Assembly (NCBI GenBank): GCA_002269645.1
Contig: NIVC01001279.1
Span: forward strand, 258,503 to 322,502
Reading direction: 5' to 3'
Origin: Macrostomum lignano
Taxonomy: Eukaryota
Length of the DNA stretch: 64,000 nt
Below the pieces are notes generated by a model. The model was not told the DNA's origin and ran no database searches. It was given only the letters and a program-made list of their open reading frames with translations. The first letter of the stretch is position 1. The number at the start of each line of letters is the position of its first letter. Below are positions 1 to 63,326 of this stretch, one piece after another. Position numbers and translations under genes: made by a program.

Positions 1-3000
1 GGAAAGTTTTAGAGCTCAAATCAGCTTCAACGATGGCGTCTGTAATAGACTCGTCCCAGCTTTGCTGTACTGTAGAAAAAAAACGCGTAGATGACAGATC
101 GCAACGTTGGGTATTTTTTATTTTAGTTTATAGTTGCAATTAAGTAAGTATCAGTGTTGAAAGCTTTCTACATGTAGTTAGAAAGTTATTAATTTTCATT
201 CCAATCAACGGAATAGCTAGTGTATCGTTAAAAAATTATGCGAGTCTATTGAAGATGGGCTTGATCATCGCAGGGATGAGTGATCAGCTGACAAACGCTT
301 TAGCTAGTTTAACAATGGCGTCAAAGTCTACCTTGAGCGAAGCACCTAGTGACGATATCTGGTCGCGAGTTCGCGTGCTGACGGGCTGCTATTAAAGTAG
401 TGAGTAAACACACAGTTAGTGGTGACGATAACTGACGGCGCCGATAATTCGATTACGGATTATGTATATTTGCAGGTTACACATGTAGTGGTTATTGCTG
501 ATGCTAACTGGTAACGAACAATTGCAGTGTCAATGGAATGTGGCTTCGAAGATGACCTTAGTGGGTAACACTACTAAATTGAGAGCGATCTTGAACTACT
601 GTTTTTTTCAGTGTTTACTAAAATCAAATGACTGGCGATAGGAACAGCAGCGGCACACCACGCTCAGTCTTCTCCGAAGCCACAGAATTCAAAATGTTAA
701 ATATAACTATTTAATGCAGTAAAACAAAGCATTGCTTACTATTTTCAATAAACATACCCTGGTAAAAGTGAAACCAATTGATATAAATAAAGTACATATT
801 AAATATTTTTTAGTAGATATTAATCGACGAACTGGGAGAATAAAAGAACCACCAACGTCACAACCTTTAAGGGCTGTTGCCACTGCCGTCTCGTGTGGAT
901 CAGCGCCAATTTCGCTAGAAGTCACTTGTTGTTGAAAAGGCACCATTTAAATTTTAAACGACTCCTGCAGTAGCAGCCCCAACTAAGCGGATAAAGATTT
1001 TAGCAAACGGCGAAACAAATGTTGAGCTGTTAATTTTTGAGTAGAGTTCGAGAAGGGTTTGAGTGTAGACTCAATAGCTGCTTGCTTTTCCTTAGTCTCG
1101 TCGTTTTGATGCTTCTGTTCTGTTTCTAACCTGCTGTTTCTAAAAATAGACTTGTCGGACCATATGCAGGAATAAAAAATGCTCATATTGTAACACAATT
1201 CAGCGTGCATTAAACGCTAAATCGTGATCGCGCATTGGCTTGAGTCATCTAATCAGCACAAGAAATATACCGTCTTTACAATGCAGCTATACGGTGGATG
1301 TTTGGTAATTTTACGTAACCATAAAGATTTTACGGTATATTATTGAGTATTACCAAATGAAATTACGGATAATGCATTACATAATGTCCAGAAAAATCTA
1401 TATATCTGTGTATTTTTGTCAATGGACAATAGCGCGCCGCGAGAAAATAGACAAAACACATAATATTAATGAGTAGTGATCAAAGATCAAACGAAAACGA
1501 TTATGAGATGAGATCGATTGTCAAGTCTCCCACTCTTGCCAATTCAATTCAATTCATTCAGCCGATCAAAATTAATTGCTATTTAATTGACACCTTTTTG
1601 CAAATATTTATAGACCTATTAAATACCCTTTCAGTGCAGGATATGATAAAAACGAAGCTCGATTGAAAGTGGCAATGCCTCGATTGAGGTTGATACCGCT
1701 GCACTAGATGGATTAATGATATTATGATATTCAACAGAGTCGATTCTGATGAAATGTTAGTTAATTGAGTGACATAATTGAGAATGAGATTGATCAGACT
1801 AATATATTGCCAAAAATCTATAAAATTATATACATTTAGTGGTTAATCCTCAAAAAAAGTATTAACTAACATATTGCCGGACTGTAAAGAAACTTTGATG
1901 GTACTCTCTGTTGTATATAGCTACTGCACATTGGTCAGGCCGAATTAAGTCAAAAGGTATGGCTGGTGAGCTGGATCGGATGTTGAAAGTTCGTTCGTAT
2001 ACATCTAGGGGAAATGCACATGCTACCCTATCATTTTTCCAACATTAGATAGTCATAGTTCCACGTGCAATCCCGTGTCATATTTCTATCGACTTGGATA
2101 TACCAGCTATTTTAACCAAATTTTTAACAAACTATGTGATAAATTATTCGTTTACAAAAGGTTTTACGGCACTTTTACGCTCTTAATCTCAAAGCAGAAA
2201 TATTCGTAAGCTTTGCACGCGAACTGATGAAGATGAAAGAATTCATGCAGATAAATTAAAACTTTTGGTAAATGCAAATTTTATAGTCATATCAAGACTG
2301 TTGCATACGAGCTACTGCAACTAGCTTGAGTATGAGCACGAGGCAGAAGAAGTTTCTACTTTCATATCGTCTGCTTTGCTCTGCGTGAGCTGCTTAGATG
2401 CTTAAATTGGAATTCAATTTTGAGCAAAAATTAAGTCGCTAAGACGGAACGCCATCAACCTAGACATTTATGACACTTTGATGCGGGCAAATCTATTAGA
2501 AGGTAGCTATCCAACACTGTAAATGTTTTCATCTATTTTGCTTTCCATTTTGAAGGAAGGAAAATTTTAATTTCCGTGTAGAAATATTCACTCGATACCG
2601 TTAAATCTACCGTTAAAGTATTTTCTGTTGATGCAGTTATCAGACATCATATTCTCTGTGGGTACTTCAATGAGCAAATGCACTTGCACTAATATTTTAA
2701 GTCCGGGAAATCTGAAATACCTGGAGTGAAAGCGTACCTACTTTCTCAACGAAACGCAACGAACACTTTTATACATTTTCAACAACAGCAAACAACAAAC
2801 AATTTCAAGAGCCTGAAATGATGCAGAAATGTTTTACTATTGACCGAGTTTTGGGCACAATAATTCAAATTTCAGTCCCATCATTACCTCTATCGAATGT
2901 CATTATTGTGCTGTCAAAATCGAAGGTCAGTCCTTTTTTTATAAAATTAAAAGCTGAAATCAGCTTTTTAGTGTCTGCCAATAAGGATTGGAGGGAACAG

Positions 3001-4588: not shown

Positions 4589-5557
<969 letters not shown>

Positions 5558-5801
5558 AGCCCCCTTCTGTTGTATTAAACTTCAAGCACTAGAAAGCAAT
5601 ACTGCACCATCACAATCCAATCACTTTCTCAGCCAATCAGATCAGAGGCTGCTCTGCCTCCTACATTCAGTTAGGACAGCTCTGTCTACTTATTTCCTGT
5701 CTCCTCGGCGATCTGCGCTGCTTCAGCGAGCGCGCAGTTGCTAACACGGAGAGTAAAAACAACTCATTGCACCCCGACGACCAAACTGTCAAGCCAAGCA
5801 G

Positions 5802-6932: not shown

Positions 6933-6991
6933 TTAGAGTAGGCTAATGAAATTCATGCATGCTACCGATTCAATACTACGCTCGTAATAAT

Positions 6992-8807: not shown

Positions 8808-9104
8808 ATAATAATATTGGATTTCACCTGCACTAAATGGGCAGATGTGCAACCGACAGCTCAGCCACAGCCTCAGCGCATCTGAAGGCTACGTACGGCT
8901 GTTCAGTCCAAGGACTGGGGGGTCGCCATACACATCCTCAATTACCCCAGCTAATGCTGGCATCCATTTTACAGCTGGGTGAACTGAAGCAATGCAGAGT
9001 TGAGTGTCGTGTTCAAGGACACAAATTGCTCCGAGTGGGTCAAGAATCGAACCCCCGACCTTTAAGTCGCGAGTCCGACGCTCTAACTACTAGGCTAAAA
9101 CCCC
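8808..9104 (-). mobile_element. Mirror copy of the CORE-like SINE
   Basis: Reverse complement of 9870..10166. Confidence 0.85.
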
Positions 9105-9471
9105 ATACTAGCAACAGCAACAACAAACCTCAGTTGCCAAATCAAGGTCTACCTAGAGCAAGAGAACTTAGCCCTAAAAGCTAAAGTGTATTGATTGGTA
9201 ACTCCTTCTTCAGATAATGACTCTTTCGGATTTTACATACGAGCGTAAGTTGTTTAATATAAATACAGAATATAGCTAGCAATTAAGAAACGGCTAATGC
9301 ATTCTCATATTTTCTCAAATCCATCCCTTGTGACCCGATCTGGAAATTTGAAGCCTTCGATTTGACCAAAGCATCGTAGCGAAATTTTTTCCTTCTGGTA
9401 GAATTGTCGAATATCTCGATGATTCGGAGGGCTGGCGACTTGCTTCTGCTTGAAAAGATGCGCAACAAAAA

Positions 9472-9502
9472 TTTAGCCTGTGTTGTTGATTGTTGTTGTT
9501 GT
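9472..9502. other. Unpaired loop/spacer of the palindrome (TTTAGCCTGTGTTGTTGATTGTTGTTGTTGT)
   Basis: Complementarity holds through A9471/T9503 and fails at T9472/T9502. Confidence 0.93.
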
Positions 9503-9869
9503 TTTTTGTTGCGCATCTTTTCAAGCAGAAGCAAGTCGCCAGCCCTCCGAATCATCGAGATATTCGACAATTCTACCAGAAGGAAAAAATTTCGCTACGA
9601 TGCTTTGGTCAAATCGAAGGCTTCAAATTTCCAGATCGGGTCACAAGGGATGGATTTGAGAAAATATGAGAATGCATTAGCCGTTTCTTAATTGCTAGCT
9701 ATATTCTGTATTTATATTAAACAACTTACGCTCGTATGTAAAATCCGAAAGAGTCATTATCTGAAGAAGGAGTTACCAATCAATACACTTTAGCTTTTAG
9801 GGCTAAGTTCTCTTGCTCTAGGTAGACCTTGATTTGGCAACTGAGGTTTGTTGTTGCTGTTGCTAGTAT

Positions 9870-10166
9870 GGGGTTTTAGCCTAGTAGTTAGAGCGTCGGA
9901 CTCGCGACTTAAAGGTCGGGGGTTCGATTCTTGACCCACTCGGAGCAATTTGTGTCCTTGAACACGACACTCAACTCTGCATTGCTTCAGTTCACCCAGC
10001 TGTAAAATGGATGCCAGCATTAGCTGGGGTAATTGAGGATGTGTATGGCGACCCCCCAGTCCTTGGACTGAACAGCCGTACGTAGCCTTCAGATGCGCTG
10101 AGGCTGTGGCTGAGCTGTCGGTTGCACATCTGCCCATTTAGTGCAGGTGAAATCCAATATTATTAT
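9870..10166 (+). mobile_element. tRNA-derived SINE with CORE-like central domain and (ATT)n tail; mirror at 8808..9104 (-)
   Basis: A-box-like TAGCCTAGTAG and B-box-like GGTTCGATTC. Body GTGTCCTTGAAC..TCAGTTCACCCAGCTGTAAAATGG resembles the MIR/CORE domain. A related copy lies at 60767. Candidate TSD TAGTAT before the head and after the tail (11996-12001). Confidence 0.85.
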
Positions 10167-11982: not shown

Positions 11983-12041
11983 ATTATTACGAGCGTAGTA
12001 TTGAATCGGTAGCATGCATGAATTTCATTAGCCTACTCTAA

Positions 12042-13172
12042 TCAAGTCACAACCGACCCAAAGCGCGCATACCCGTCGGCCTGCAGCTCTCGTTCCCGCT
12101 GTTTCTGCAGCGATCGACGCAGCTTCGCTTGCTGCCGCAGCTGCTTTTCCAGACGCTTCCGAAGGCACCGGCGTCGGCTACGGTGCTGACGCAACCGCCG
12201 TCGCCGCCTGTACTTCTGCATGCTGCTGCGCAGGAACCATCGCACCGATCGGCTGTAGCAAAGGAGCACCAGAAAGTTCAGGCAGGAGTCAACCGGTACG
12301 AACACCATGCCCCAGGTGGCCAGCTCCTCCAGCACCTGCAGCCTGGCAAAATCAGATTGGTCCAACGGCAGTGTCAAACTGTTCAACAGGTAGCCGCAGG
12401 TGACGGTATAGGTTATAGCCAGTGGAGACTCGAGTAGCACGAAGCCGATGGACAGAGTCAGAACCATCTTCGTCACCCGGTTGGTGGCCCGGTGCGGCGC
12501 CAGTCGGTAGCGCAGGGCGTGCGCGATCTTGGCGGTAGCGGCCAGAATCGCCAGGCCTGGCAGCATGACGCCAAGAGCGGCGAAGCTCACCGACTTGATG
12601 AGGTAGACGCGAATATAAGCCACGAGAGCATTCTCCGCAGTTGCATTGGCTTGCTTATCCACTGCACCAGTCAGCGTGGGACTTCTAGCGAGCAGAGTCA
12701 GAGTCGAGAGGCACACAATCAAGCACACAATCGAGAACTGATGCCTGCCGCGAAAATAGTCATTCCGTTGGGCGGCCAGCTGAGGCCGCACCGTGATGGC
12801 CATTCGGTGCAGAGTGACGGCCAGCAGCCAGTAGTTGCGAGTCATCTGAACGGCGTGAACTCCGAGCCCGAGCTCCTGCGGCAGAGCTCCGGGGTCCTTG
12901 GCCGCCATCATGCTGATGAACAGCGACAGTAGGGCCACACTGAGCAGTATTTCCATAACAGTGAGCACCTGCATGCCGGCAGAGCGTTCGCGCACCTGGC
13001 TGCGAATCAGGATGAACAGCAGAAACGAGTTCAGCACGAGGGCGAATGTGGCGAATGTTGCCACTAGTCCGATGGCCGCTTGAGTCGACATGGAAACGTC
13101 TTTGAAGCCAGCAATGGCCGGAGCGGATGAGTTCATGCCATTGGTAGCATTCTCAAGCAGGTCGGCGTCCAT
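12042..13172 (-). CDS. Second copy of the 376-aa orphan GPCR (palindrome mirror)
   Basis: Translation identical to 5802..6932 in the ORF track. Confidence 0.85.
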   Translation of the reverse strand: MDADLLENATNGMNSSAPAIAGFKDVSMSTQAAIGLVATFATFALVLNSFLLFILIRSQVRERSAGMQVLTVMEILLSVALLSLFISMMAAKDPGALPQELGLGVHAVQMTRNYWLLAVTLHRMAITVRPQLAAQRNDYFRGRHQFSIVCLIVCLSTLTLLARSPTLTGAVDKQANATAENALVAYIRVYLIKSVSFAALGVMLPGLAILAATAKIAHALRYRLAPHRATNRVTKMVLTLSIGFVLLESPLAITYTVTCGYLLNSLTLPLDQSDFARLQVLEELATWGMVFVPVDSCLNFLVLLCYSRSVRWFLRSSMQKYRRRRRLRQHRSRRRCLRKRLEKQLRQQAKLRRSLQKQRERELQADGYARFGSVVT

Positions 13173-13416
13173 CTGCTTGGCTTGACAGTTTGGTCGTCGG
13201 GGTGCAATGAGTTGTTTTTACTCTCCGTGTTAGCAACTGCGCGCTCGCTGAAGCAGCGCAGATCGCCGAGGAGACAGGAAATAAGTAGACAGAGCTGTCC
13301 TAACTGAATGTAGGAGGCAGAGCAGCCTCTGATCTGATTGGCTGAGAAAGTGATTGGATTGTGATGGTGCAGTATTGCTTTCTAGTGCTTGAAGTTTAAT
13401 ACAACAGAAGGGGGCT

Positions 13417-14499
<1,083 letters not shown>

Positions 14500-17288
14500 T
14501 TGTTTGTTGATTGAATAACTTAGTGAGTGATTTATAATTTTATTTACTTAATGGTAGATTAATCATTAACTTTAATAATTTTTAACAAGTAAAGTCAGCC
14601 ACTGTAGCAAACAAAAACAAACAAAGCTTTCTCGAGCCGCAGTATTACGTGCGCTAGGTTGACCCTTCCAGTAAAATAATAATTCTGTGCGCTCTTTTGT
14701 TCGCTCTATTCATGTGATTCCTTCCCACCTCTTCGGCCTAACTGCCTGACTGGGTATCAGCTGCACAGGGATTGAGGACGTGTCTGCACTAATGCGTCAC
14801 TCTGAACGTCTCTCGCCGCGCATTGTTCCCACGCATCTGAGCGATGGGTTGCTCGGGTCTACCGGGGTAATTTTCTGTCGAAAAAGCTCTGCCCTCTCAA
14901 TTTTTGCAATCCTATACTTTTCATTGCTTGCTCGCGAATTGAAGCTTGCAACCCATCATTTCCTGAGACTCTCAAGGCACTTAGGGTTGCCGTCTATCTT
15001 CAGTATAGCCAAATGCCAACTGTGCATTCCCAAATCAAGCCAAGCAAAAGTCAGGCAATCCTGCCAGAAGATATCTCGGATCAGATCAAATAAAATAACT
15101 CCGCTGAACCGTCAAAAGTCTAAAGGACAACCTCACACTGAGCCCTTAGCTTAATTGTGGACTCGTAGATGCTAGTAAAATAATTTTCATATCTTTAAGG
15201 CTTGTCGAAGGTTAATTAATTAGGAATGATGATATCTGAAGCAATCTGACTGTCTCTGCAAGTTGTATATTTCCTGCTTAGAGTCACCACTACGAAAGTA
15301 TTCTTGAGCGATGGAGGTTTGTTAAAGCTAGACAGGATTTAACCTACTGCCTTTCTCAAGGACGGCTGTTCAGAAAGCAGGAAGTTTCACACGAGCTTAG
15401 TGCTAAGCGTCTGAAAAGTATGGATAAGAAAAATGAATCCTCCGCAGACGTAAAGCCAAGGACTGCTTAAGTAGAAGGATGGGAAACTGCAGGTTTTTTC
15501 CCATTGCATTGTCTTTTTTACAGACATGTAGTCATTCTGTTACACATTTAGTTGCACTGTCATTAAGCTACGAATGCTACAATAGATTCATAAAATCAAT
15601 GAGGGGAGTCGAGCTGCGCCATTCCTGTGATTTTTTATTTATGATGATTTATAATATATGAGCTATAAGATAGACATATCAAGAGATGGACATTGGGTCT
15701 CCCTTCTGTATTCAAAAGCAATAAAAATGTTTGTGCTGAAAAAAATGAAAAAAACTCCTATCTCCATAGTGTATGTTTTTGGTAAAAACTGCCTCCTAAA
15801 ATTTTCCAAGGAGGCTTTCATGTCTCTCTTTTCTCTGAAATCTGGATCAAACAGAGCCAGGGTAACCACATGTGATAGGCAAATTTCCAACGGATATCGA
15901 ATTTCATTGCATTTCCTGAAAAAACAAGCGAAAGGATTGCCTGTAGAGAGTCTTGTCGAGGACCGCTTAGTAAAGTCGAATCAAGAAGGTCTTGTATGAA
16001 GATAATCTTTGAGCTGGTTTAGTTTGGCTGATTGCCTAGAGGTAAGCTACACTAAAGCTGGGAGACCTTGTACCGGAACCTTTATTGAGCACCAACTGTT
16101 CCCTCCAATCCTTATTGGCAGACATTATTCAGCTGATTTCAGCTTGTAATTTTATAAAAAAAGGACTGGACCTTCGCTTTTGACAGCACAATGACATTCG
16201 ATAGAGGTAATGATGGGACTGAAATTTGAATTATTGTGCCCAAAACTCGGTCAATAGTAAAACATTTCTGCATCATTTCAGGCTCTTGAAATTGTTTGTT
16301 GTTTGCTGTTGTTGAAAATGTATAAAAGTGTTCGTTGCGTTTCGTTGAGAAAGTATGTACGCTTTCACTCCAGGTATTCCAGATTTCCCGGACTTAAAAT
16401 ATTAGTGCAAGTGCATTTGCTCATTGAAGTACCCACAGAGAATATGATGTCTGATAACTGCATCAACAGAAAATACTTTAACGGTAGATTTAACGGTATC
16501 GAGTGAATATTTCTACACGGAAATTAAAATTTTCCTTCCTTCAAAATGGAAAGCAAAATAGATGAAAACATTTACAGTGTTGGATAGCTACCTTCTAATA
16601 GATTTGCCCGCATCAAAGTGTCATAAATGTCTAGGTTGATGGCGTTCCGTCTTAGCGACTTAATTTTTTGCTCAAAATTGAATTCCAATTTAAGCATCTA
16701 AGCAGCTCACGCAGAGCAAAGCAGACGATATGAAAGTAGAAACTTCTTCTGCCTCGTGCTCATACTCAAGCTAGTTGCAGTAGCTCGTATGCAACAGTCT
16801 TGATATGACTATAAAATTTGCATTTACCAAAAGTTTTAATTTATCTGCATGAATTCTTTCGTCTTCATCTGTTCGCGTGCAAAGCTTACGAATATTTCTG
16901 CTTTGAGATTAGAGCGTAAAAGTGCCGTAAAACCTTTTGTAAACGAATAATTTATCACATAGTTGTTAAAAATTTGGTTAAAATAGCTGGTATATCCAAG
17001 TCGATAGAAATATGACACGGGATTGCACGTGGAACTATGACTATCTAATGTTGGAAAAATGATAGGGTAGCATGTGCATTTCCCCTAGATGTATACGAAC
17101 GAACTTTCAACATCCGATCCAGCTCACCAGCCATACCTTTTGACTTAATTCGGCCTGACCAATGTGCAGTAGCTATATACAACAGAGAGTACCATCAAAG
17201 TTTCTTTACAGTCCGGCAATATGTTAGTTAATACTTTTTTTGAGGATTAACCACTAAATGTATATAATTTTATAGATTTTTGGCAATA

Positions 17289-17298
17289 TACGAGCGTA
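17289..17298. other. TA-CGAGCG-TA insertion (probable DNA transposon excision footprint); empty allele at 1803-1804 in the other arm
   Basis: Right arm reads GGCAATA-TA-CGAGCG-TA-TTAGTCTG. The left-arm reverse complement reads GGCAATA-TA-TTAGTCTG. Confidence 0.75.
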
Positions 17299-17933
17299 TT
17301 AGTCTGATCAATCTCATTCTCAATTATGTCACTCAATTAACTAACATTTCATCAGAATCGACTCTTGTTGAATATCATAATATCATTAATCCAGCGGTTT
17401 GCTCTAGTGGCAGCGGTATCAACCTCAATCGAGGCATTGCCACTTTCAATCGAGCTTCGTTTTTATCATATCCTGCACTGAAAGGGTATTTAATAGGTCT
17501 ATAAATATTTGCAAAAAGGTGTCAATTAAATAGCAATTAATTTTGATATGCTGAATATTGAATTGGCAAGAGTAGAAGACTTGACAATCGATCTCAGCTC
17601 ATAATCGTTTTCGTTTGATCTTTGATCACTACTCATTAATATTATGTGTTTTGTCTATTTTCTCGCGCGCGTTATTGTCCATTGACAAAAATACACAGAT
17701 ATATAGATTTTTCTGGACATTATGTAATGCGTTATCCGTAATTTCATTTGGTAATACTCAATAATATCCCGTAAAATCTTTTCGTTTTTTCTACAGTACA
17801 GCAAAGCTGGGACGAGTCTATTACAGACGCCATCGTTGAAGCTGATTTGAGCTATAAAACTTTGCCTCTAAACCATTTCAACCACTTCACCCAACTTCGC
17901 ATCACTTCTTTTGGCTTCTTTTTGACTATTTTA

Positions 17934-19426
17934 ATGGTCAAAGCCGTGCAGGAATGACTACGTCTATGGTTGAAAGAGAAAGCCGTGCAGGAATGACTAC
18001 ATGTACATCTATGGTCGAAAGAGAGAGCCGTGCAGGAATGACTACATGTACATCTATGGTCAAAAGCGAGAGCCGTGCAGGAATGACTACATGTACATCT
18101 ATGGTCAAAAGCGAGAGCCGTGCAGGAATGACTACATGTACATCTATGGTCAAAAGCGAGAGCCGTGCAGGAATGACTACATGTACATCTATGGTCGAAA
18201 GAGAGAGCCGTGCAGGAATGACTACATGTACATCTATGGTCGAAAGAGAAAGCCGTGCAGGAATGACTACATGTACATCTATGGTCGAAAGAGAAAGCCG
18301 TGCAGGAATGACTACATGTACATCTATGGTCAAAAGCGAGAGCCGTGCAGGAATGACTACATGTACATCTATGGTCGAAAGAGAGAGCCGTGCAGGAATG
18401 ACTACATGTACATCTATGGTCGAAAGAGAAAGCCGTGCAGGAATGACTACATGTACATCTATGGTCGAAAGAGAGAGCCGTGCAGGAATGACTACATGTA
18501 CATCTATGGTCGAAAGAGAGAGCCGTGCAGGAATGACTACATGTACATCTATGGTCGAAAGAGAAAGCCGTGCAGGAATGACTACATGTACATCTATGGT
18601 CGAAAGAGAAAGCCGTGCAGGAATGACTACATGTACATCTATGGTCGAAAGAGAAAGCCGTGCAGGAATGAGTACATGTACATCTATGGTCGAAAGAGAA
18701 AGCCGTGCAGGAATGACTACATGTACATCTATGGTCAAAAGCGAGAGCCGTGCAGGAATGACTACATCTATGGTCGAAAGAGAAAGCCGTGCAGGAATGA
18801 CTACATCTATGGTCGAAAGAGAAAGCCGTGCAGGAATGACTACATGTACATCTATGGTCAAAAGTGAGAGCCGTGCAGGAATGACTACATGTACATCTAT
18901 GGTCAAAAGCGAGAGCCGTGCAGGAATGACTACATGTACATCTATGGTCAAAAGCGAGAGCCGTGCAGGAATGACTACATGTACATCTATGGTCAAAAGC
19001 GAGAGCCGTGCAGGAATGACTACATGTACATCTATGGTCAAAAGCGAGAGCCGTGCAGGAATGACTACATGTACATCTATGGTCAAAAGCGAGAGCCGTG
19101 CAGGAATGACTACATGTACATCTATGGTCAAAAGCGAGAGCCGTGCAGGAATGACTACATGTACATCTATGGTCAAAAGCGAAAGCCGTGTAGGAATGAC
19201 TACATGTACATCTATGGTCAAAAGCGAAAGCCGTGTAGGAATGACTACATGTACATCTATGGTCAAAAGCGAAAGCCGTGTAGGAATGACTACATGTACA
19301 TCTATGGTTGAAGGATAAAGCCTTGCAGGAATGACTACATGTACATCTATGGTTGAAAGAGAAAACCGTGCAGGAATTACTACATGTACATCTATGGTCG
19401 AAAGCGAAAGCCGTGCAGGAATGACT
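17934..19426. repeat. 45-bp tandem array (~33 units; ATGTACATCTATGGTCGAAAGAGAGAGCCGTGCAGGAATGACTAC), with a few 39-bp units
   Basis: Periodicity read directly (18001, 18046, ...); 15-aa periodic ORFs. Confidence 0.97.
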
Positions 19427-20302: not shown

Positions 20303-21677
20303 TTAATCAAATTTCTCTTGTTCATCCTTTTTCGATGAGCAGCTGTAGATGAGCAGAAAGGAGCTGGTAATGATGAAGTTGAGCACAATTAGGACGAACC
20401 CGATGAACCAGATGACAGCCAACGACATCTTTGTGCTGCTATTTTCACCGAGCTTCAGTTCCTTTGTGAACTCGAACCCTGCAGCCAAGTTTGAGGCGTT
20501 CAAGTTCAGAAATCTAATATATTGTGATGTGAGCACAATAGGAAGAGGAAGAGGAAGTAAGGGGACCCTCAGGAACTCGTAAAGTGAGTACTTTACCATT
20601 CTGTGTGGTGAAGTGATAATTCTGAGTGGTAAAGTGACCATTCTGAGTGATAAAGTGACCATTCTGAGTGGTAGAGTGACCATTCCGAGGGGGTAAAGTG
20701 ACCATTCTGAGTGGTAGAGTGACCATTCCGAGGGGGTAAAGTGACCATTCTGAGTGGTAGAGTGACCATTCTGAGTGGTAGAGTGACCATTCCGAGGGGG
20801 TAAAGTGACCATTCTGAGTGGTAGAGTGACCATTCTGAGTGGGTAAAGTGACCATTCTGAGTGGTAGAGTGACCATTCTGAGTGGTAGAGTGACCATTCT
20901 GAGTGGTAGAGTGACCATTCCGAGGGGGTAAAGTGACCATTCTGAGTGGTAGAGTGACCATTCTGAGTGGTAGAGTGACCATTCTGAGTGGTAGAGTGAC
21001 CATTCTGAGTGGTAGAGTGACCATTCCGAGGGGGTAAAGTGACTATTCTGAGTGGTAGAGTGACCATTCTGAGTGGTAGAGTGACCATTCCGAGGGGTAA
21101 AGTGACGATTCGGAGTGGCCCGGTTATCATCGTTACGAGTAGCTCAGCAAAAATCTCTGCCAATCAAAGCGACTAAGCCGTTACACTTACGTGTGGTTGT
21201 CACGCCAACAATGGCGCACACAATGCAGCAAATTCCGCAGTTAATTAACCAGAAAGACAGAATAGTAAAAAACTGCACCTCCCAGGGAGGCACCAATCGA
21301 GATTTAGACATGATAATTTTCTCCTTCATCGGCCGGCTTCCTAGATAGTTGATGATATCCTGATGCAGTGACGGGTCGTCATTAAACACTTTCTGCACAT
21401 CGATGCTGTTTTCGTGGACATCGGTGTACCTCTTGTCCTCGGACTTCTGATCATGGTGCACCTGCTCTTCCGCTAGTTGATTTAACAGAGTCGACCTTCG
21501 TTCAAGTTCTTGATGCTCCACCAGTTTATCGACAGCTGTAGGAGATGCAGCAGGTTGATTGCTGACATTTTCGTCGACGCTGTCCTTGTCTCTTGATTCA
21601 TCGCACTGATTATTGTTGGCGCAGTTAAGAAACTGAGAATACACGTAATATTCATAGTTTTCGGCTAGAAATGACAT
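20303..21677 (-). CDS. Predicted two-exon orphan membrane protein (~220 aa; acidic N-terminus, two hydrophobic helices); exons 21677-21191 and 20478-20303
   Basis: Canonical GTAAGT donor at 21190 and CTGCAG acceptor at 20479 are phase-compatible (487+176 nt). The join is CAIVGVTTT-R-FEFTKEL. AATAAA lies ~70 nt past the stop (plus-strand 20230-20235). Confidence 0.55.
20592..21118. repeat. 21/22-bp minisatellite (GTGACCATTCTGAGTGGTAGA / GTGACCATTCCGAGGGGGTAAA), intronic
   Basis: Two interleaved unit types read directly. Confidence 0.95.
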
Positions 21678-28576: not shown

Positions 28577-29384
28577 GACGGGGAATTTTTCTGGAAGCGT
28601 TATGGGAAACGTACTTTACTAGAGTCTAGAGATACTGAATATGGTATAGTTGGACGCATGCTACACAGTCCACGAGTGATTTTATATTACACGCTCGTAT
28701 ACTCGGCATATTTAGCTAGCTCAATAAAAGTTGCACCTGCTCATTTGCTCGCAAGGTGTCAGACCGCACATGCTCGATCAAGCATTAGGGACCGAGACAC
28801 GTTGCGACGCACCTGACACAGGTGAAAGATATCTCCCTGACGAATGTATAATAGCGAGTCTAATTACTTCAGTATTTCACTGAAATAATTTTCGCTCTGA
28901 ATGAGAGACGAGTTCAGAGACGAAACTGAAACTTGTATAGAATGTTGCCAAGAATTTTGCCTTATACCAAACAGAGGACCCAACCCGAGCTTCAGTCAGA
29001 CTGAGGGCCATTCTGCAGCTACTCGAAGCTAAGTGGACTGTTTCTAATGCGCACTTTCGGCAAATTAAAAAGGAATGAGAGAGCCAGGGCAATGCATTTT
29101 AGTAGCATGCATACCGAATCCTGAGTGCCTACTCTGAGTTGCAAGAGCTTTCCTCTTAAGTAATAATCTTTTGATTCTTCGAATCATTATAATGCTTGAA
29201 AAATTCCAAACTTCCTTTCTTTATACACTATTACGAGCGTATATTGGGTTTGGAATTAAATCAATTTGAAGTCAGTCGATCTACAACAAAAATGGATTCA
29301 CAATTGGACTGGAGTAAAAGCGCAAAATTCTGAGGGAAAAGTAAGAATAGTTCTTGTTGTTAAAAATCTAATATGAGAGGGAAG

Positions 29385-32900: not shown

Positions 32901-33477
32901 CATAGTGAGGCCAGGCACTGAGATTTTGTCTGAATGCCTCAGGCGAGTTTTAACTTTTTAAATTTTAACTTTTACGCTCATAATTTGCTGTATTCAGTCG
33001 GCTGATTAAACGAGTAAAGTCTACTACAAAAAACCACACAATTCACACTATTCAGTATAGTGTGAATTTTAAAATAAAGTAAAATGAACGCACAGCCGCA
33101 TCAGTGCAGCGCCGACTGCACTTTTATAAGCCGTCAGTTTCTTGTTCGTCTACACTGCACTTGCCCGACAGACCTTTCTCGTCTTCGCAAGGTAGACAGA
33201 CAGGAGCTACCTTTGGTCGAATCTCTGCAGCAGCGCCTTGGTGACCATATCTTACTTGCTGGCATTGATCTGAGGCCTGGCGTCTCTTGCGTTTTGATAG
33301 ACTGGGCTGGTTTTGTGACTTGCCATGGAAAGGTCGAATAATGTTGGGATTCGGATTAAATAGCACCTATGGATTAGAGGGTACATGGGAGAGAGAGAAA
33401 GTGAAACTCAATGAAGTAAATGATGAAGTTAATGTCTGTGAATAAAGAGTCAGAAGGGAGAAAATAGTTACATGGAG

Positions 33478-36070: not shown

Positions 36071-39000
36071 ATGACCGAGGACAAATCCAGACAGAGCCGT
36101 TCGGGCACTCTTCTGTCAGCATCGAATCAGTCAAGACAACAGCAGCAGCAGCAGCAGCCAAAGCTCCTATCACTCGGATTCGTTCACTTCACTGGCGGAA
36201 TTGACACCGGTTCGCGTCCGGTGGTCTGCTTCCCCCCGAGACAAATTATTCGAATGCATTTGAACAGCGTTGGGAGCCCCGAACTGGCCAGCATTGTCGA
36301 ATATCTGGTGTCCATTGCGCCTAGCGAAGTGTCGATGTCGACTGAGACCGGTTCAAATCGGCGGACTCATCGAGGACTGGCGTTTCTGGCCGACTTCAGA
36401 GCGTGCTCTCAGTCGATATTTCGGATTGTCATTGACGCCTTGGATAGTGTTCAGGTGCAGTTGGTTGCCTAATGGGCTTGGCTTGGCATATCTTTGAGTA
36501 GTGTCGGGTGGCATTTTCCATAATTTAGGGTCATGTTTTAGGGTATATTCTGTGGTTTTAGGTAGTTTAGTCTGAATTTTTTAGGTAGTTTAGGGTGATG
36601 TTTTAGGTAGTTTAGTCTGAATTTTTAAGGTAGTTTAGGGTGGAAGTTTTAGAGCGGTTCTGGGCGGAATTTTTTAGTAGTTTTGTTGGTGTTGATGGAT
36701 CTTTAGGGCGGTATTTTGGGTAGTTAAGTATGAAATTTTAGGCTAGTACTAGCAATATAGTGCCCCCCTTCGGGGCGCGCAATAAGCAAGGAGCAAAAAT
36801 TTTTGATGCAAATCTATTATAAAGCACATTTTCTTAAGAACCAATTCCTTCTTCAGTTTTATAAATCACCTTACTCGTGTAAAATTGTCATGGACAAAGA
36901 TGTTTGCTAAGAATACGAGCTATCTTTTTTTGTAAAAATAACAAAAATACAACAAAAAAGCCTTTACAAAGATAACACACACTTTTGTCTAAATAGAATG
37001 TTTCCCCCAGACCGCAAGCATCCCCCCAAATAGCAACCATTCGCCGATAGCAAGCACCCCTCTCCCATATCCCAAATAGTATGGGTGGAATTTTCGGGTA
37101 GGCTATGGTGGTATTTTTGAGTAGTTTGGTGGCATTTTCGGGTAGTTTAGGGTGATATTTTAGGTAGCTTTGGTGACATTTTCGGTATATTAAGGTGGTA
37201 CAAGTATTTTGGGTTATTTAGGGTAATGTTGTAAGGTAGTTAAAATCAATAACCTACCTTAAGGCGATGTTCTGGGAAAGTCAAGGGTGGCACACGTTTA
37301 GTTATAGCACATATCTGAATCAAAAATATTCAATCAAAGATCAACGTTGACGCTATGCGAAGCCTTCTGTACCGTCGTACTATAGACTGGAGGCAGTTAG
37401 AAGGCAAGATTGTCTTTTCTTGACAGAGCTGCTCAAAAATTTTTTCTGCGCGACTTTGTTTGTCAAATCAAAGTGTGACAAAAATTATTCACTCTTGGCC
37501 GTTCAATTTTCTCACTTCCTGTGTGCTTTTCTGAGTAAGCCAAACTTCATGACTTTGTACCTTGTCCAGACAGGTGGAGTTTAGCAATAAAAAATGACAA
37601 AAGGTATAGCCAAAACAAAAGCCAAATAGAGAAATATAGCTCTCCATACGGCAATCTTTAGTATAGATGGACTATCGTTGCAAGCTCACGTGGAATTTAT
37701 TTGGGGCTTTAAATTCATTTGTGTGCACTAAAATGGACCTGCGGCTTGTCGCGAGACCATGGTTGTGGGACGATGTTGATGTTTCATCAAATCAATTTCC
37801 TTTTGAAAATATTCTGCCACTCCCACTTCAACAGCTGAAGCGATAGTGAAATCACTTTTCTATTTTTACCATAAATTGCAGTCTCGTTCACCTGGCAGCG
37901 TCGCCGTGTTCTACGCTCTGCTGCCGAGAAGCAAGGAGCTCGCCAAGAGTCTTCAAAAGATGCTCGGTCTCTACCAGAAGAAGACTTTGCTGCCTAGTAG
38001 AAAGTCGGCACCAGATCCGAATGCCAAGTCGTTTCAGGTTTGTTAGCTCGTAAATCATACAGAGATCTTTGATGATACTTTGATAACTGGACAGCAAATT
38101 AATTCGATCAAAAACTTTTGAAAATTTTCAGAGCGTATTGTTGCCAAGCTCACAAGAACTTTATCAGTTTGTCAGCAAAGCCAACCTGATGCCGGACTTT
38201 GGCGGCACGTTAAACTATGATCACCAGGCCTGGATGAAGCTGAGAACTGTGAGGCATGATCTGCATAAATCCATTGCGTTTTTAATATTGATCAGGGGGG
38301 GGGGGTTGGGCGTCTCCTTGCCCTTTCCTCTTTGCAGTTCCCAAACGACAATATTTTTTTCTGGCGCCCTTGGTGCTAAAGCTCCTGGTTCTAAAGCTCC
38401 TGATGCTAAAGCCCGGGTGCTAAAGCTCCTGGTTCTAAAGCTCCTGGTGCTAAAGCCCGGGTGCTAAAGCTCCTGGTTCTAAAGCTCCTGGTGCTAAAGC
38501 CCGGGTGCTAAAGTCTCTGGTGCTAAATCTCCTGGTGCTAAAGCCCGGGTGCTAAAGCTCCTGGTTCTAAAGCTCCTGGTGTTAAAGCCCCTGATGCAAA
38601 AGTCCCTGGTGCTAAATCCCAGGTGCAAAAGCCCCTTGTGCTAAAGCCCCGGGTGCAAAAGCTCCTGGTGCTAAAGCCCCTGATGCTAAAGGCCCTTGTG
38701 CTAAAGCCCCTTGTGCTAAAGCCCCTGGTGCTAAAGCCCCGGGTGCTAAAGCCCCGGGTGCTAAAGCTCCTGGTGCTAAAGCCCCTGATGCTAAAGGCCC
38801 TTGTGCTAAAGCCCCTGATGCTAAAGCCCCTGGTGCTAAAGCCTTCTAAGACGCCCCTAAATTAGGAATCCTGATTATACGCCTCAGATGCTACTTCAGT
38901 AACTGCACGAAAATTAAGCTGACACATTACAAGTTTTCTAATAGACGCAGATGCCTCATTATGTAGTTTCTTACAAGCTGTTAACAATTTTATTGCATAT

Positions 39001-51090: not shown

Positions 51091-54000
51091 TCTGTCGTTG
51101 AATGCGCTTCAAGCGTCGGTCGCTGTCGTATTAGTAATGTTTTCCTGGGCAAAGTGGAAACAATTGTAGGCTATTGTGTTAGGAAATTAGTTGGCAACAA
51201 AGCCTTTTGTTTGGTCATGGCCTTCAAACACTGTCTGATAGTCGCTGCCTTTGGAGCGTGCTTTTCTGGCTGGAATTTGGAGTTAGAGAGCAAGTGCCTC
51301 AGGCCAGGGATTTTGATGTAGCCGAGCTTTTTCCCACTCTTCGTTTTTAACCTTATATTTCTGGCCTCTCGCCGTCTCCCGCTCGTGGTTAGGTCTGATT
51401 GGCTTTCGCCAGTTTTTCTATGCTTTTCCTATTCCCATCTTTTTGTTGTGCTCTCGTAAATGTCCTTTTGATTTTGTGGGTTTTCTGACGAGTAAATGGA
51501 TAAGAAAGCCAGCTCCCGGGAGATTTCTTATGGTCTTCTACGAGCTATATTTCTAGCTGTCATCAGGAATTCTAAGCTAGATGCAATAAGTGTGTTGCAT
51601 GTCAAAACCTCGGGTAATTTTTTTATTTTCCCACATTGGCGGCTGATAGCATGCAGAGCTTCGTGACAAAAATTCTTACTTCGCTTGCGTAAAGACAACT
51701 TTATGTGGCACACTAACGAATCTAGCCAGTGTCCCTCGAAGTTCCCAGACCCAGTGTGGATATTCACAATATTTGATGATTTCTGACAGACTTGTCACTG
51801 TTACACTGTAATTCTGGCTCCTGCGCTATCAGCTCTGCTCCCTGCCTGTCTGTCTTTCATCGGGTCACGCAAGCCTTGCATTCGAGAAGTTAAGGCAGCG
51901 GCTTTAACAATAGCCCTCAGAGCATTCCAGCTTCCGGTCTGAGAGACTTCTTTTAGCTCGTATTATTAAATTTTCAGTGCCCATAGTTGCGTATTTATCA
52001 TATAGAAATTTTCATCAATATTTAGTTTTTGCACTTAGTATCTAAAAAATGGAATGAGTTCATAATAGTGTGGCCACGCATATATAGAGCCCAATATAAC
52101 GGAGTTAGATCAACTAGCTTACTGTAAGTAAAAATATATTGTAGTCATGGAAATGTTACGAGCGTATCCTAGCTAATAGCACTGCTCAGCATTGGCTTAA
52201 TTATTTCAAAAAGTCCTATCGTTTTTAACTTTTTTATGGCTTTGTCGATATCGAACGATAGAACGATATCGACTTTGTCGATGGGGTTTAATTATAATTT
52301 TATTTCTTTGTAAGTCTTCATGGCTGCATGTCATATAAGGCTGAGTTGCAAAAATATCTATGCGAAATCTCTGTCACTCAGAGGCTAGTATCCTTTCATG
52401 TCGCTTAAGAATGGTGACGGGTGTTAAAATCGATTTTTTTTATTTCACCGACCATATATTTTCGGCACCGGTGAGCAAGTAAGCTTTCTTTGACTGATAG
52501 ATTGTGTAAAGATGCATTAGATTCTGTCTTGGGAAATGACTGACTGAGCGTGCTTCGAGATATGTTAGCTCTTATTCCCCTTGCAATTCGAAGGCATTAT
52601 AATTAATATGAGTCAAAGCGAATGAGTAGCAGATGTTAGTTTATTTTTTGTATAGGGATACGAAACAAAACACTCCAAATCATTTAAATGCCGGATGTTT
52701 TGTTAAACGAAACGCTTGACAAGTTTTTTCACTTGTCAGGATAGCGCTTGACTAATTGTCACTTGTAACTTGTAGATTTGTCACAACTTCTCATGGAACG
52801 CATTAGTTGGCGGAATGTCACTTGTCACCTGTAATTTGTCTGGCAAGTGGCTTCATGAGATCCACCCCAGCTATATAGAAAATTTAATAAATTTTTAAAT
52901 GCTATTGAAGAGTGTACAAAATATGACTTTTTCTTCAAGGATAAAAATCCAGATATCTAGTATGTTTTCTACAATAGTTCAAATTAACTTTACATCCTTC
53001 TTTAACGAAGACAGTTGCTTTTTCTGTTATTTTTCCGGACCGACTAGTTGCGTGTCTTAACAATATTTTGATTCCTGCTTTGTAGAGCTGCGTTACAAAG
53101 TATTGATTTATGGTTTTATTTCCGTTTCCGTTTCGCCACATTTGATCTGCGACGATGTGAAAGTTTATCTACCTTTATTATGCGAATGTAGCTAGACGAA
53201 TCTAATTAGTTTATTTATTTAGTTGCCTTTATCTTACGCTCCCATATCACTCAAAGACATGCGAAAGGTAATCTTGTAAATTCCCCCATATGCGTGTGTG
53301 TTTTGGGTAAAGCAAAGCTGTGTAGCCGAACTTCGGCCCCTTTGTATAGTCCGATGTCTGGGGTTTTGTGTAAACACTTGAGTCGCTGCAGGGACTATCG
53401 CTATGTTTTATGAATATTTTGCTGCAATACCGCACTGTATGCATTTTTTATCCACAGTAAATGTATCAGAGGATTTCGTATAGATATTAGCACAAATTAG
53501 CATTGGTTTTCCTGCGACTTGGAGCTTTAAGTTTTTAACGAAACGAGCGGTATATTAATCAATCAGATTCGCCTCTAGTTCGCGTGCACTTGTGCAACTT
53601 ATCTACAAACATTGGCTGAGTTTTTTATTTATGCTGGTGTCTGGCTTAGCTCTGTCTAAATTTAATTTAATGTGTGCTTCATCCCTTTTTTGGGTCGGCG
53701 CTCCTTTCTAACTAATCTTTATGAAGGCCGCTGCTAGCTTACCATTCTAGTTTTTGGTAGACCACACATGACTTTGCTCGTATGTCTACCCGGAATTTAC
53801 CAGTGTTTTTACTAGCCCTCTCTAGTCCAACCCTTGTGGTTTTTGGTATCTCGCTGCTACTCCCGGTCCTTCAGTAAAGGCGGGTTCACATTACCACAGT
53901 AAGCTCCACGGGTCTAAGATTTCTCAAATCAAATTTAACATGGGCGTGAACCAACTGTAAATTGATTCAATCAATCTTGGATCCACAGAGCTACGAGCGG

Positions 54001-55194
54001 TAATGTGAACGGACCCTAAGGTTACTGCACCACCCTGGTAGTTCGGTAGGCTACTTCTACCACTAGTTCTTGGATCTTCGGGTAGGCAACTTTCCCTTTG
54101 CTTCTTCTGTAGTCTACAGTATCCCTCTCTTCAGTGATTCAATATATGGTTTGTAATTTGGTTGTGACGCTTGTGACGGAATGCATGTAGTGACAAGCAA
54201 AGGTTAATTTAATGGCAGACACCTATACTTTGCAGCACTGCAGTTAAAATGTCATCGTTGTTCTTTCTGTCTCCCAATTCTCTCTGGGTGTCACGTTTGA
54301 ACGTTCCGTCGCTTTGTCTGAATTCCTGTCGTGTAAGTTCGTGGTACTGGATTGAATTTGCATCCGAAATCTCATTTTTTCATTTGGATAATGTTTCTTA
54401 GTTTTGCTTTATCACGACATTCAGTCAGTCAGTCAGACGGTATTATAGCTTTGGTAGATAGCAGCAAATTGTTTTTTTGTTCCGACGCTATGAGAGGACG
54501 GATATACGGGGTCGAACGAATGAGGTAATAAATCTTTTTTGACGTAGATTCTGGAAACATTTATGTATTGTATTCGTGTGTGTGTGTGTGTTTCCTGGCA
54601 CTAACTTTCTTCTGTTTTGCTGATTCTGGCAAAGTGTCCCCGGCGTGGCCGCACGAATTGCTTTGCAAAGTATGTTTTTGTGCGTAGTTTAGTAGGTGTA
54701 TTATGTGTGGGAAGCATCTGAATTACACAAAGCATTTCGATAGGAGTTAGGCTTGCGTTCGATCATCAAAAAAAGTTTTTCATGGTCCTCCCATCCGCAA
54801 CCAAGCCTTTTACTTCCCTCTTGTGGGCCACTCCTAGATTGCACTTAAGGACTGGATCCCATTATTAAACATTCCTGGTGGTACAGTCGAATGGGCTTTC
54901 CATCTGTGTTGACTAACGACCGATTTCCATCTCGAGTCAGGCATTATTAATAATATAAAGTAAAGGCTTATAAAGTGCATATTTCTAAAATCTAAGGAAT
55001 GGGATATTAAGATCAAATTTATAGCGAATGTTTTGCACTTTTAGACAGGACAGTTTTGTTTTATTTTCAAAGACTGAATCGATGTGGTTGTGTTTTAGCT
55101 GTTTTGCCTTAATGCCTTGTGATCGGATTGAGTCGAGACGGGCTAAAGCTTCCAGCGTGACGCTGACGCTGTAATCACAAAATAAATACAGTCT

Positions 55195-56907: not shown

Positions 56908-59719
56908 GTCTAGCTCTTTTTGACACATCCTTGATTCTAAAGGGCCCATTTATCGCTTCCCTCCCAGCCTCTGACGAGTACAAGTATGTTGTTTTATAGT
57001 TTCACCTTTCTTCGTGCACTTCTTATTTTGCCCGAGGGGGGGCTGTGGAAACGAGACTGGCTTGTCGAGAGGTTAAGCCTAAGTGTCTGTCGATCTGAAG
57101 ACTCGCGCTAGCGAGATGATACTTAGTGCTGGAGGCGGTACAAAGATTCTAGCTCTATTTTAGAGAGGAAATTATTATAGAGAGGACATTGCCAGCTAAA
57201 AAAGAGAATGAAAAAGGAATATTTTAAATTGGATTTAGACGATGTCTTATCACCGCAGCTGTTTCTGTCTGCTGTCAAGTAGGTGCCGGATCTCTCCAAT
57301 GAAGAGATTAAATACTGGATCGATTATGTCCTTTCGATACAGTTAGTGCACTGAGATTATGTTCAATCGAATCGTCTCAGAATACTAATCGATTTCTAAC
57401 TCTGCGGGAGGTAATTTGTCTTGGTAAGGACAGTAAGCAAAGAAGATTACACTGCTAATCGATGTCTAAGGCCCATTGATTTTCAAGCTGCTCCCATGTG
57501 CACGTGTGTCTGCTCAAGGCTAGATATAACATGTAGTACGATTGAGGCTAGACTGATTAGCATTTCGGTGTCTCAGAGCAGCCCTTTAATTCAATAATTA
57601 TAGTCGATTTCCATGTCTGTTGTTTTCAATTTTCTAGTAGGGCTTCGTTTAGCCCTTGAGTCGTGCTCCAGTGATTTTAAGAGAAGACTTGTATCAGCAA
57701 TGTTTCAGCAAGTTGCAAAGCTAAAATTTATTCAAGCAGAATCTTGCAATTAATCACTTGAGAGGCTTAAAAATCCTATTTTGAGTTAAAGGAACCTCCC
57801 ATGGCTGACCAACCAGCCGTGTCTTAGTTGGGCTTCAATTTGCACTTTTGTCCGTTGCTCAGACACTTTGTTACTTTTATTTTTAATTTCCTCTTGAATT
57901 TTTCGGAGCCTATTATCCATTAGGCCTATACTTTTGCCTAATGCCCGGTTTTATTCGAATATGTCTGAAACAGGAAGCTTTTTTAAAGAGATCGAGAATC
58001 TGTGGTGAGGGGCTGACTTTAAAGGCCTCTGAAATATTTTGCAGAAGTTTCTCTTGCAGTTTACTTGGGGGTTCAATCCGCATTGGGCTTCTCTATAGGC
58101 TTTGTAATCCAATCAGATTTCCATGCCAATGCTTGCATGCTGGCTCCCTTTTTGCCTACTAGTATTACCTCTCTCTCTCTCTAATTCCCTATTCTCCGAT
58201 TTCTTTCCTTCTCTGGGCAACAAGTTCTCTCTGCTATCAGCTTTATCGAGTTCTTATTTTCAGCATATACTACGAGCGTATTTATCTCACTATGGGATTC
58301 GCTCTGATTAAAGAGTTTAGTCGGCCGCGTGCGATTAGCGATCGCGTATATTTTATTTGTAGCTTGTTTATTTTCCTATTCTGCTTTACATTTCTTGGAA
58401 ATTTTGTTTGGATGCTTGAATTTGCGCTCAAATTTAATACCGCCGTTAATCAGAAAAAAATTAAAGCGTAGTCGATACGAACTCAAGTGCTCAATAGTAC
58501 AAATTAAAGACTAAAAATAGAAAAAATGCCTAATCTTAAAATAATTTCCACCATTATACGAGCATATAGATTTTCCGGCAAGTTGGTTGTTCAATTACTT
58601 TCTGTTCAAATAAGTTACTGTCGCCACAATGAAGTATCGATTGATGCGGGCGACGCCTAATCTCATTAAATTTGTATTAGTTTGATCCGTACTGGTTCGC
58701 TTGCTAGCAATTTTCCCCTTAGATGCGGGAGTAGTTCCTGGAGTAGAAATTGGGACTAGCGATTTTCCCGTTGCGGGTGCGGGGAGTTTTGGTCAATCTA
58801 ATTTGGCTGCACGGACTCTCGGCAACGATGGGCGCGGCGTCAACTTGCAATCCCGCGTTCTGTCCTGTTTTCCATATAGCTCTGCACTGGGTCCGTAGCA
58901 GCCTTAGTCCGATGCCTCTGCCCCTCGCGTGCTGCGAGGTGAGTATTCGGGAAATAGGGGAGTGGGAAATTTTTGCCTGCTCGATTTTCTCCTCCCTTCA
59001 TCCTCTTCTTCCTTAAATTTCCCCCCGTTCCGCGGATAAACTGCCTGTCCGCGCATCCTGCATGGTCCGCGTATGGGTGGGGGCTACATGGGTTTTGGTA
59101 AGAGATCCTCTCCTGAAATTGTCGATTTTTCCTATGCGTTTCAGTTGCCAATAGGGGAGGCTGAGGTGGGGTAGGTAATTCGGTTTTAGACAATTCTCAA
59201 CTGCAAGCCTAGAAGCCTGGCGTCGTTTCCCTCTTGACTTGGCGGTCGCTGCGACAGTGTCCAGTTTCCAGTTCTCACATGCATGAGGGTAGCGGTCTCT
59301 CGATTTTTTTTGTATTTCCCCTTTTTCCTCTTTGTGCTCACTGCATGTTGGGGGAAGACGGGTATTTTGAGACGTTTCCTATAATGGGAAGAAATGACTT
59401 CCTTAATTTCGTCTTTAGAGCGCTGAGAAACAAGCCAGGACAGACAGTGAACTAGGTCGAAAAGTTGATGCGGTGCAGCGTTTTTTAATTCTCAATTCGC
59501 CTTGATGACAGGGTGGCTTAGTCACCACTCGGGAATTACATTTGAAACCTATGACAAACACTAAATCCCGTGACACTTTTAAGGAATCAAACAATCGGCA
59601 TCTTCAGGCAATTATACCAGAAAGAAGGTAATTTTTTAAGCCTAGTAAGCCAATATGATGCAAATAAGCAGGTATGGGTAGCAAAGTTAGATGGCACTGA
59701 TTGAGAGGCAAGGGCATAG

Positions 59720-61084: not shown

Positions 61085-61306
61085 AACAGGGTGAACTGCA
61101 GCTCAGCCTAATTCGCCGCTGCGTAGCCTTATTAAGCTGCGTAGGAATCCCGGCCCCAATGCTGCTTAACTTGCATACATGGATACTCTGTAACACTAGC
61201 ACAATATTACATGTATCTAATAAATATATTATTTCTTTTTTCACTCGTTAAATTTCAAAATGTCATCTTAAATCTTCAGTGATAGCAAGTGTTGGGAGGA
61301 CAGAAC

Positions 61307-62570: not shown

Positions 62571-63326
62571 AACGCGATTACTTTTGTTGGCTATACTGGT
62601 AATCGCTCAAATATTATTTCAAATTTTCGCCATGACGATGATTTTTTTCACTATACCGGTAAGTAGCAACGGATATTCTATAGATGTTCTTGCTAGCTCT
62701 ATCAATGAGCGATTTAATTCCATTTATTACTACTACTTACTGAAGTCGTGTCTGCTTTTCACATGCAACAGACTGCTTTCATTGTATAGAATATTATTAG
62801 TGTTGTTTGTGCTTGGCTGTATAAACATGCTGCTGCGCTTTTTGTTTTGCCAAAGTTTTCAGGTGATTTTTATGTCTTGCGTCGCTTAATATTTTTCTGT
62901 GAATTCTTTCTTTTTCGCTTGCTTTGTTCGGGTTTCCTGTGCGTGCCATGCATAACATTGATTTGTTTCGCAACATTGATTGCTAAACCATATTGATCAC
63001 ATGTTTTTTCAAGTAAATTGTCTTTGTTGAACTGACTAAAAAAGGCGCAATAAAACTAGCCCTTACGCTCGTACTCTATTATTTACATTAGTTCAATCTA
63101 ACAATATCTAAATCGTATACCGCGTATTATCTACGATAATTGATGTAAGCTTTCATTTTACTGTCGTTTGATAGACAACTTTCAGATACCTTTGTTGTAT
63201 CGATTTTACAATCAGGGAGTATGTATTGATAAGAAGCAGTGTTTCCTCTGTAATGCTCAGGAGGATGCTAGGAAATATTCTATGAAAGGTCATGAGCAAC
63301 CCTATAAAACCTTAAACCATATACGG

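Follow-up and report, generated by a model that had tools for sequence, protein, structure and literature searches.

Background: footprints of Tc1/mariner elements

Transposons of the Tc1/mariner superfamily insert at TA dinucleotides and duplicate the TA. Arca and colleagues are said to have reported in 1997 that the footprint of the Minos element comprises four terminal nucleotides and the duplicated TA, produced by way of a heteroduplex with a two-base mismatch. Passages of two papers (PMC10992017; PMC3386967) describe Minos as leaving a characteristic 6-bp footprint, and the 1997 Arca title names repair by heteroduplex formation (PMC3386967). A Minos inverted-repeat primer appears in a passage of a further paper as TACGAGCCCCAACCACTATTAATTC, i.e. 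TACGAGCCCCAACC... (PMC3680223). By this primer, Minos ends in TA|CGAGC, and CGAGC is also the invariant part of the flatworm motif described below. A Tc1/mariner element has also been described from Macrostomum lignano, namely the DD37E element MS-Mali, which is present in 35 copies (six of them intact) and whose inverted repeats begin with CTGGG (PMC10379824).

Sequence examined and its general features

The window referred to throughout is the whole 64-kb stretch of DNA that was analysed, the last 64 kb of M. lignano contig NIVC01001279.1 (assembly GCA_002269645.1; record coordinate = window coordinate + 258502). It is nuclear DNA of an animal and holds intronless GPCR genes, a Ty3/gypsy pol remnant and many tandem arrays; Rfam and tRNA scans of the window returned no rRNA, tRNA or Rfam families. 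Together with contigs reached via protein anchors, ~120 kb of non-redundant M. lignano DNA was examined, which is a small sample. Locus L001 (NIVC01001279.1:204475-225842) is an inverted paralogous copy of window positions 43914-61438; it is 95-99% identical and belongs to the same contig, at a distance of ~80 kb. Locus L002 (NIVC01001344.1) and its homeologues L004 and L005 (NIVC01000037.1 and NIVC01000098.1) were anchored by P0004 and its cluster member P0131; identity between L004 and L005 is 99.4-99.9%, and that of L002 to both is 88-98%. Locus L009 (NIVC01001279.1) corresponds to window 14116-38546 (100% identical), and L003, an ENA metagenome contig, was without the motif and uninformative. 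A homology search with the gypsy RNase H fragment gave no identifiable M. lignano proteins.

The window begins with a giant inverted duplication (positions 3-17863; centre at 9472-9502, with a 31-nt spacer). Its inner arms, 4589-9471 and 9503-14385, are 100% identical and its outer arms 96-99% identical, and since an inverted copy of window 43914-61438 (L001) lies on its far side, the arms may be longer than 50 kb. Either the palindrome is real, or the assembly may have joined two haplotypes or paralogues in a fold-back. The GC-rich inner part of the palindrome holds a degraded pol remnant of Ty3/gypsy type, with fragments of RNase H and integrase (7411-8753, minus strand, with its mirror at 10221-11563, plus strand); the nearest relatives in the database are only 67% identical to it. 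Intronless ORFs for rhodopsin-type GPCRs were identified at 5802-6932 (+), 12042-13172 (-) and 49723-51090 (-). The first two are mirror copies; the third (455 aa) is 100% identical to the M. lignano protein BOX15_Mlig009868g1 and has an identical-protein duplicate in L001. The micro- and minisatellite load is very high, at ~19% of non-mirrored sequence (TRF), and several of the tandem arrays create long spurious ORFs in all frames. The arrays lie at 4589-5557, 13417-14499, 17959-19426, 20595-21118, 29454-29996, 30766-31833, 34553-35555, 38366-38843, 55875-56512 and 63335-64000.

Distribution and form of the motif

The most over-represented dispersed 10-mer of the window is TACGAGCGTA, with nine exact copies against 0.04 expected from dinucleotide shuffles, in which it never occurred more than once. 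The earlier note had given nine positions for this 10-mer, far above its chance expectation; the excess holds, and all nine coordinates and strands proved right. Its count of seven independent sites is likewise borne out, as 6977/11988 and 9238/9727 are mirror copies within the 100%-identical inner arms of the palindrome. The copies are dispersed and use both strands, and their flanks are unrelated, as had been claimed (mean in-register identity 27%). The sites of the window, with related forms, are as follows.

17289..17298, plus strand: TACGAGCGTA, the filled member of the palindrome-arm pair; 17289-17296 hold the 8 additional bases
1795..1810, minus strand: empty counterpart of 17289; the left arm has one TA (GGCAATA-TA-TTAGTC), and the junction falls between 1804 and 1805
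6977..6986, minus strand: TACGAGCGTA, 45 bp beyond the stop codon that ends the intronless GPCR ORF 5802-6932; mirror of 11988
11988..11997, plus strand: TACGAGCGTA, mirror of 6977 in the 100%-identical inner arms
9238..9247, plus strand: TACGAGCGTA, ~240 bp from the palindrome centre; mirror of 9727
9727..9736, minus strand: TACGAGCGTA, mirror of 9238
29232..29241, plus strand: TACGAGCGTA, ~690 bp upstream of the start of a called 843-aa gene (P0130)
52157..52166, plus strand: TACGAGCGTA, also in the inverted paralogous copy at L001:8930
58271..58280, plus strand: TACGAGCGTA, also in the paralogous copy at L001:2997
63064..63073, minus strand: TACGAGCGTA, exact copy
2306..2314, plus strand: TACGAGCTA, mirror of 16781
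16781..16789, minus strand: TACGAGCTA, mirror of 2306
36914..36922, plus strand: TACGAGCTA, exact copy
38044..38052, minus strand: TACGAGCTA, exact copy
51539..51547, plus strand: TACGAGCTA, common to the paralogue at L001:9548
51954..51962, minus strand: TACGAGCTA, common to the paralogue at L001:9131
58557..58566, plus strand: junction variant TACGAGC-A-TA (TACGAGCATA), of lower confidence; common to L001:2710
28688..28699, minus strand: possible junction variant TACGAGC-GTG-TA, of lower confidence
53992..54002, plus strand: possible junction variant TACGAGC-GG-TA, of lower confidence; common to L001:7088
32973..32982, minus strand: TATGAGCGTA, one mismatch; may be a decayed footprint or a chance match

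The 10-mer is one form of a wider motif, in which a constant core, TACGAGC (20 copies against 5.6 expected), is followed by 0-2 (once three) junction bases, mostly G, and then by TA. The 7-bp form, the 9-mer TACGAGCTA, has six copies at five independent sites in the window, where 0.56 would be expected. TACGAGC-A-TA, TACGAGC-GG-TA and TACGAGC-GTG-TA are represented in the window by one case each, and TACGAGC-C-TA was found in L002. The 9-mer form, the junction variants and the motifs in other M. lignano contigs had escaped the earlier note. The two single-mismatch copies that it listed, at 32973 and 58557, do exist, although the excess of one-mismatch copies overall is weak (six against 2.5 expected). 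Setting seven independent exact sites against the ~3.5 one-mismatch copies above chance suggests a mean age near 5% divergence. As this is similar to the divergence of the homeologues, selection need not be invoked.

All words of the form TA-N(2-7)-TA were also scored in 66 kb of non-redundant M. lignano DNA after masking of tandem repeats. A third-order Markov model supplied the expectation, with the following results.

TACGAGCGTA: observed 8, expected 0.03, p ~1e-17, ranked first
TACATGTA: observed 10, expected 0.89, p ~4e-8, ranked second
TACGAGCTA: observed 5, expected 0.29, p ~1e-5
TACGAGTA: observed 5, expected 0.82, p ~2e-3

The second-ranked word (TA-CA-TG-TA) is what we take to be the classical Tc1 footprint, the sequence of which reportedly goes back to Plasterk 1991. 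On that identification, the two strongest TA-flanked words both have the form left by Tc1/mariner excision. Plasterk 1991 is cited in a passage of PMC2874221. Outside a 45-bp satellite, the window holds 11 scattered copies of TACATGTA, their flanks unrelated (0.74 expected), at 169, 40752, 40774, 45235, 45270, 45494, 46840, 48081, 48334, 60713 and 61208; the word is also present in every unit of the 45-bp satellite at 17959-19426. It may mark a further class of transposon scar; no pair of empty and filled sites turned up for it.

Empty and filled sites in duplicated sequences

The earlier note had pointed to the palindrome arms as a natural pair of empty and filled sites, and this pair is real. 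Against GGCAATA-TA-TTAGTC in the left arm, the right arm carries exactly 8 extra bases (TACGAGCG, 17289-17296); identity of the outer arms is 96-100%. A second case was identified in an intronic (TATC)n array of L002, which is broken up nine times by TAGCTCGTA, always through an insertion of 7 bp at a TA within the repeat. Neither homeologous array, that of L004 with 84 units or that of L005 with 98, is interrupted. All nine insertions have the same orientation and follow a 538-bp higher-order period, so that they represent at most four independent events and possibly one. Because the repeat is otherwise perfect, the comparison is unambiguous despite the few independent events. Alignment of paralogues, which the earlier note had proposed for detecting presence or absence of exactly the motif, thus gave differences of 8 bp between the palindrome arms and of 7 bp between L002 and L004/L005. 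The motif is flanked by TA on both sides at all sites, and the empty sites show one TA.

The expanded L002 array occupies ~2.4 kb (L002:10551-12949), its 538-bp higher-order repeat carrying the 7-bp insertions, and its clean counterparts of 84-98 units lie at L004:10534-10869 and L005:5803-6194.

Nine other motif sites are common to paralogous copies. TACGAGCGTA is found at the same position in L002, L004 and L005, between the Fer2 and DHHC genes, and a TACGAGC(C)TA site lies upstream of a 648/649-aa gene in the same three loci. All seven motif-type sites of window 43914-61438 are present in both the window and L001. Surveys of indels in L002 versus L004 and in L001 versus the window revealed no further motif-type indels, and outward extension of L002 and L004 by ~9 kb at each locus added no new motif sites. 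This distribution shows most insertions to be older than the duplications, with at least two that are younger.

These shared sites bear on the possibility that the motif is a sequencing or assembly artefact, such as an adapter or barcode remnant or a polishing error. The assembly is a draft, its contig has a suspicious giant inverted duplication, and one of the two empty/filled pairs lies between the arms of that duplication. Diverged paralogous contigs that were assembled separately nonetheless carry identical sites at corresponding positions, which shows these to be inherited genomic features rather than read or polishing artefacts. A literature search for the 10-mer gave only incidental matches to unrelated primers, and no SMRTbell adapter is detectable at the palindrome centre with an approximate adapter sequence as query. 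An artefact is therefore extremely unlikely.

Retention of sites between paralogous copies would also be expected of a protein-binding cis-element (a promoter or insulator motif) kept by selection, and sites lie 150-1100 bp upstream of gene starts at 29232, 28693, 52157 and L006:11246. The intergenic spacers are short, however, which makes closeness to genes expected, and in this small sample the motif positions vary, with others in an intronic microsatellite and at a 3' end, just after a stop codon. A motif that has two lengths and that arises as a discrete 7-8-bp insertion at TA also fits poorly with a binding site. Furthermore, the nine motif sites common to paralogues show one change among them at 1-4% divergence, and are conserved no better than their flanks. 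We therefore regard a selected cis-element as very improbable.

Search for a parent element

The earlier note had proposed a search for TA-flanked elements with terminal inverted repeats beginning CGAGC and encoding a transposase; none was found in the ~120 kb of non-redundant M. lignano DNA. When elements of up to 8-12 kb with TA-CG...CG-TA or TACGAG-type inverted ends were sought in the window and L002, only the palindrome itself was recovered. No repeated continuation after TACGAGC was seen in any locus examined, and tblastn with an approximate Sleeping Beauty transposase query found no Tc1-like transposase coding remnant in the window. If the family numbers a few hundred copies, failure to meet the parent in ~120 kb is no surprise.

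Other insertions were noted during these comparisons. A 1241-bp segment of the left palindrome arm (82-1322) stands opposite 3 bp in the right arm (17782-17784); it has no inverted ends, for which reason it was rejected as a parent, and no obvious duplication. A 2.68-kb LTR retrotransposon with TG...CA LTRs and an apparent 5-bp duplication (AAAAT) occupies L001:17610-20289 and is absent at window ~44994-44999. A 1.5-kb DNA transposon at L001:15110-16617, bounded by the inverted ends GGGCATTTCCG.../...CGGAAATGCCC and showing a short duplication of TTA/ATTAG type, has no counterpart at window ~45975-45979. It was rejected as the source of the scars as it is not TA-specific. MS-Mali was ruled out on account of its CTGGG ends.

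The absence of a parent element from the sampled DNA would suit a stereotyped micro-insertion made without a full transposon, either by integration of tiny transposon-end fragments or as templated filler at TA breaks made by a transposase-derived nuclease. So would the very high density (~12 exact sites in 54.5 kb) and the occurrence of several copies within one microsatellite. Against this, the motif matches a known Tc1-family terminus, and its interrupted palindrome is the form predicted by annealing of overhangs after excision. We know of no mechanism that adds the same 5-6 bases and duplicates the TA each time. Such micro-insertion is thus considered unlikely.

Proposed origin of the motif

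The motif most probably represents the excision footprints of a cut-and-paste element of the Tc1/mariner superfamily with inverted repeats beginning 5'-CGAGC(G), as in Minos. This is the best supported of the readings considered, and is circumstantial for as long as the parent is an element that we infer. The earlier note had proposed that the 8-bp insertions at TA were left by excision of a TA-duplicating transposon. The proposal gains from the second empty/filled case, the shorter length variant with the same invariant TACGAGC, the inherited sites, the match of CGAGC to Minos, the A(-1)/T(+1) bias of the flanks and the enrichment of TACATGTA, and is weakened by the failure to find the parent in ~120 kb.

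The putative element would insert at TA and duplicate it. On excision, its transposase would cut the non-transferred strand several bases inside each end, leaving each flank with TA and a 3' overhang of transposon-end bases, and host end-joining would seal the gap. Two identical 5-nt CGAGC overhangs could anneal one base out of register, giving a G:C pair, an A/G mismatch, a G/A mismatch and a C:G pair; both 3' ends would then be base-paired and one base would be filled on each side. Mismatch correction would yield CGAGCG or CGCTCG, which are mutual reverse complements and hence one motif in two orientations. Out-of-register annealing with fill-in would in this way account for the interrupted palindrome TACG-AG-CGTA. 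Where a single overhang was kept, TA-CGAGC-TA would result, and the other junction bases (A, C, GG) may be repair noise. Alternatively, a 6-nt overhang from a CGAGCG terminus could also give the 10-mer. A 3+3 reading (CGA + GCG) was set aside, as it needs imperfect termini and leaves the 5-nt form unexplained.

Tc1-family elements prefer AT-rich targets, and the inferred targets agree with this: A at -1 and T at +1 occupy 15 of 30 positions versus 28% expected (p ~0.009), an agreement that local AT-richness weakens.

For a known kind of feature, the motif is unusual in density and in length. Both forms together occur at ~1 per 4.5 kb, and the 10-mer at 1 per 8-11 kb. Counting against an origin by excision, a density of ~1 per 4.5-8 kb implies very many cycles of insertion and excision. 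By extrapolation there would be ~100,000 scars, a number that an element long active in a single lineage could reach, yet a striking one. A more extreme version holds that the transposon family was almost wholly purged by excision, leaving ~100,000 scars and few or no surviving copies. This could have come about through an unusually long (5-6 nt) staggered cut with very high germline excision, or through host-driven or soma-specific removal; under the latter, whole-animal assemblies would show scars where the germline holds elements. We consider such a purge improbable.

As to length, a claim that the footprint is beyond precedent would be overstated, since relative to the four nucleotides reportedly left by Minos the excess is 1-2 nt. 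A retained end of 5-6 nt is nevertheless, to our knowledge, longer than for any characterised Tc1/mariner element. The earlier note's statement that Tc1/mariner footprints are usually 2-3 nt had left out the 6-bp footprint of Minos (PMC10992017; PMC3386967).

If the motifs are footprints, cut-and-paste transposition has left a fossil record that can be counted, in an organism that serves as a model of regeneration; scar density, sharing between homeologues and polymorphism among lines could then be used to date bursts of activity against the whole-genome duplication. Retention of 5-6 nt, if true, would widen the range of staggered cleavage known for Tc1/mariner elements. The scars point to a flatworm-native Minos-like element, which might serve as a vector for M. 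lignano transgenesis. Where the 10-mer emerges from promoter motif searches in M. lignano, it should be treated as a probable transposon scar before a regulatory role is called.

Comparison with known systems

The footprints of Tc1/Tc3 and Sleeping Beauty (TACATGTA; TAC(A/T)GTA) resemble the proposed flatworm footprint in consisting of TA, end bases from staggered cuts, and TA. They differ in that 2+2 or 3 overlapping bases derive from CA(G) ends and not from CGAGC. MS-Mali illustrates that TA-duplicating Tc1/mariner elements do live in the M. lignano genome.

The closest likeness is to Minos, a member of the Tc1 family from Drosophila hydei. The present host is a flatworm, and no Minos-like element or transposase was seen in the M. 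lignano DNA examined. The Minos footprint reportedly holds four terminal nucleotides and TA (TACGAGTA or TACTCGTA), whereas the flatworm motif keeps 5-6 nt. This canonical 4-nt form is not dominant here, with three copies of TACGAGTA versus 1.26 expected in the window and five versus 0.82 pooled. Being barely enriched, it suggests that a Minos-like parent would cut, or be repaired, differently. In common with Minos, TA is duplicated on both sides, and the Minos inverted repeat opens with the five bases CGAGC that the flatworm motif contains. The repair through a two-base mismatch heteroduplex that is said to operate for Minos also matches the interrupted palindrome TACG-AG-CGTA. Transposon excision scars are a known kind of feature, and what stands out here is the density, the length of 5-6 nt and the link to Minos-type termini in a flatworm.
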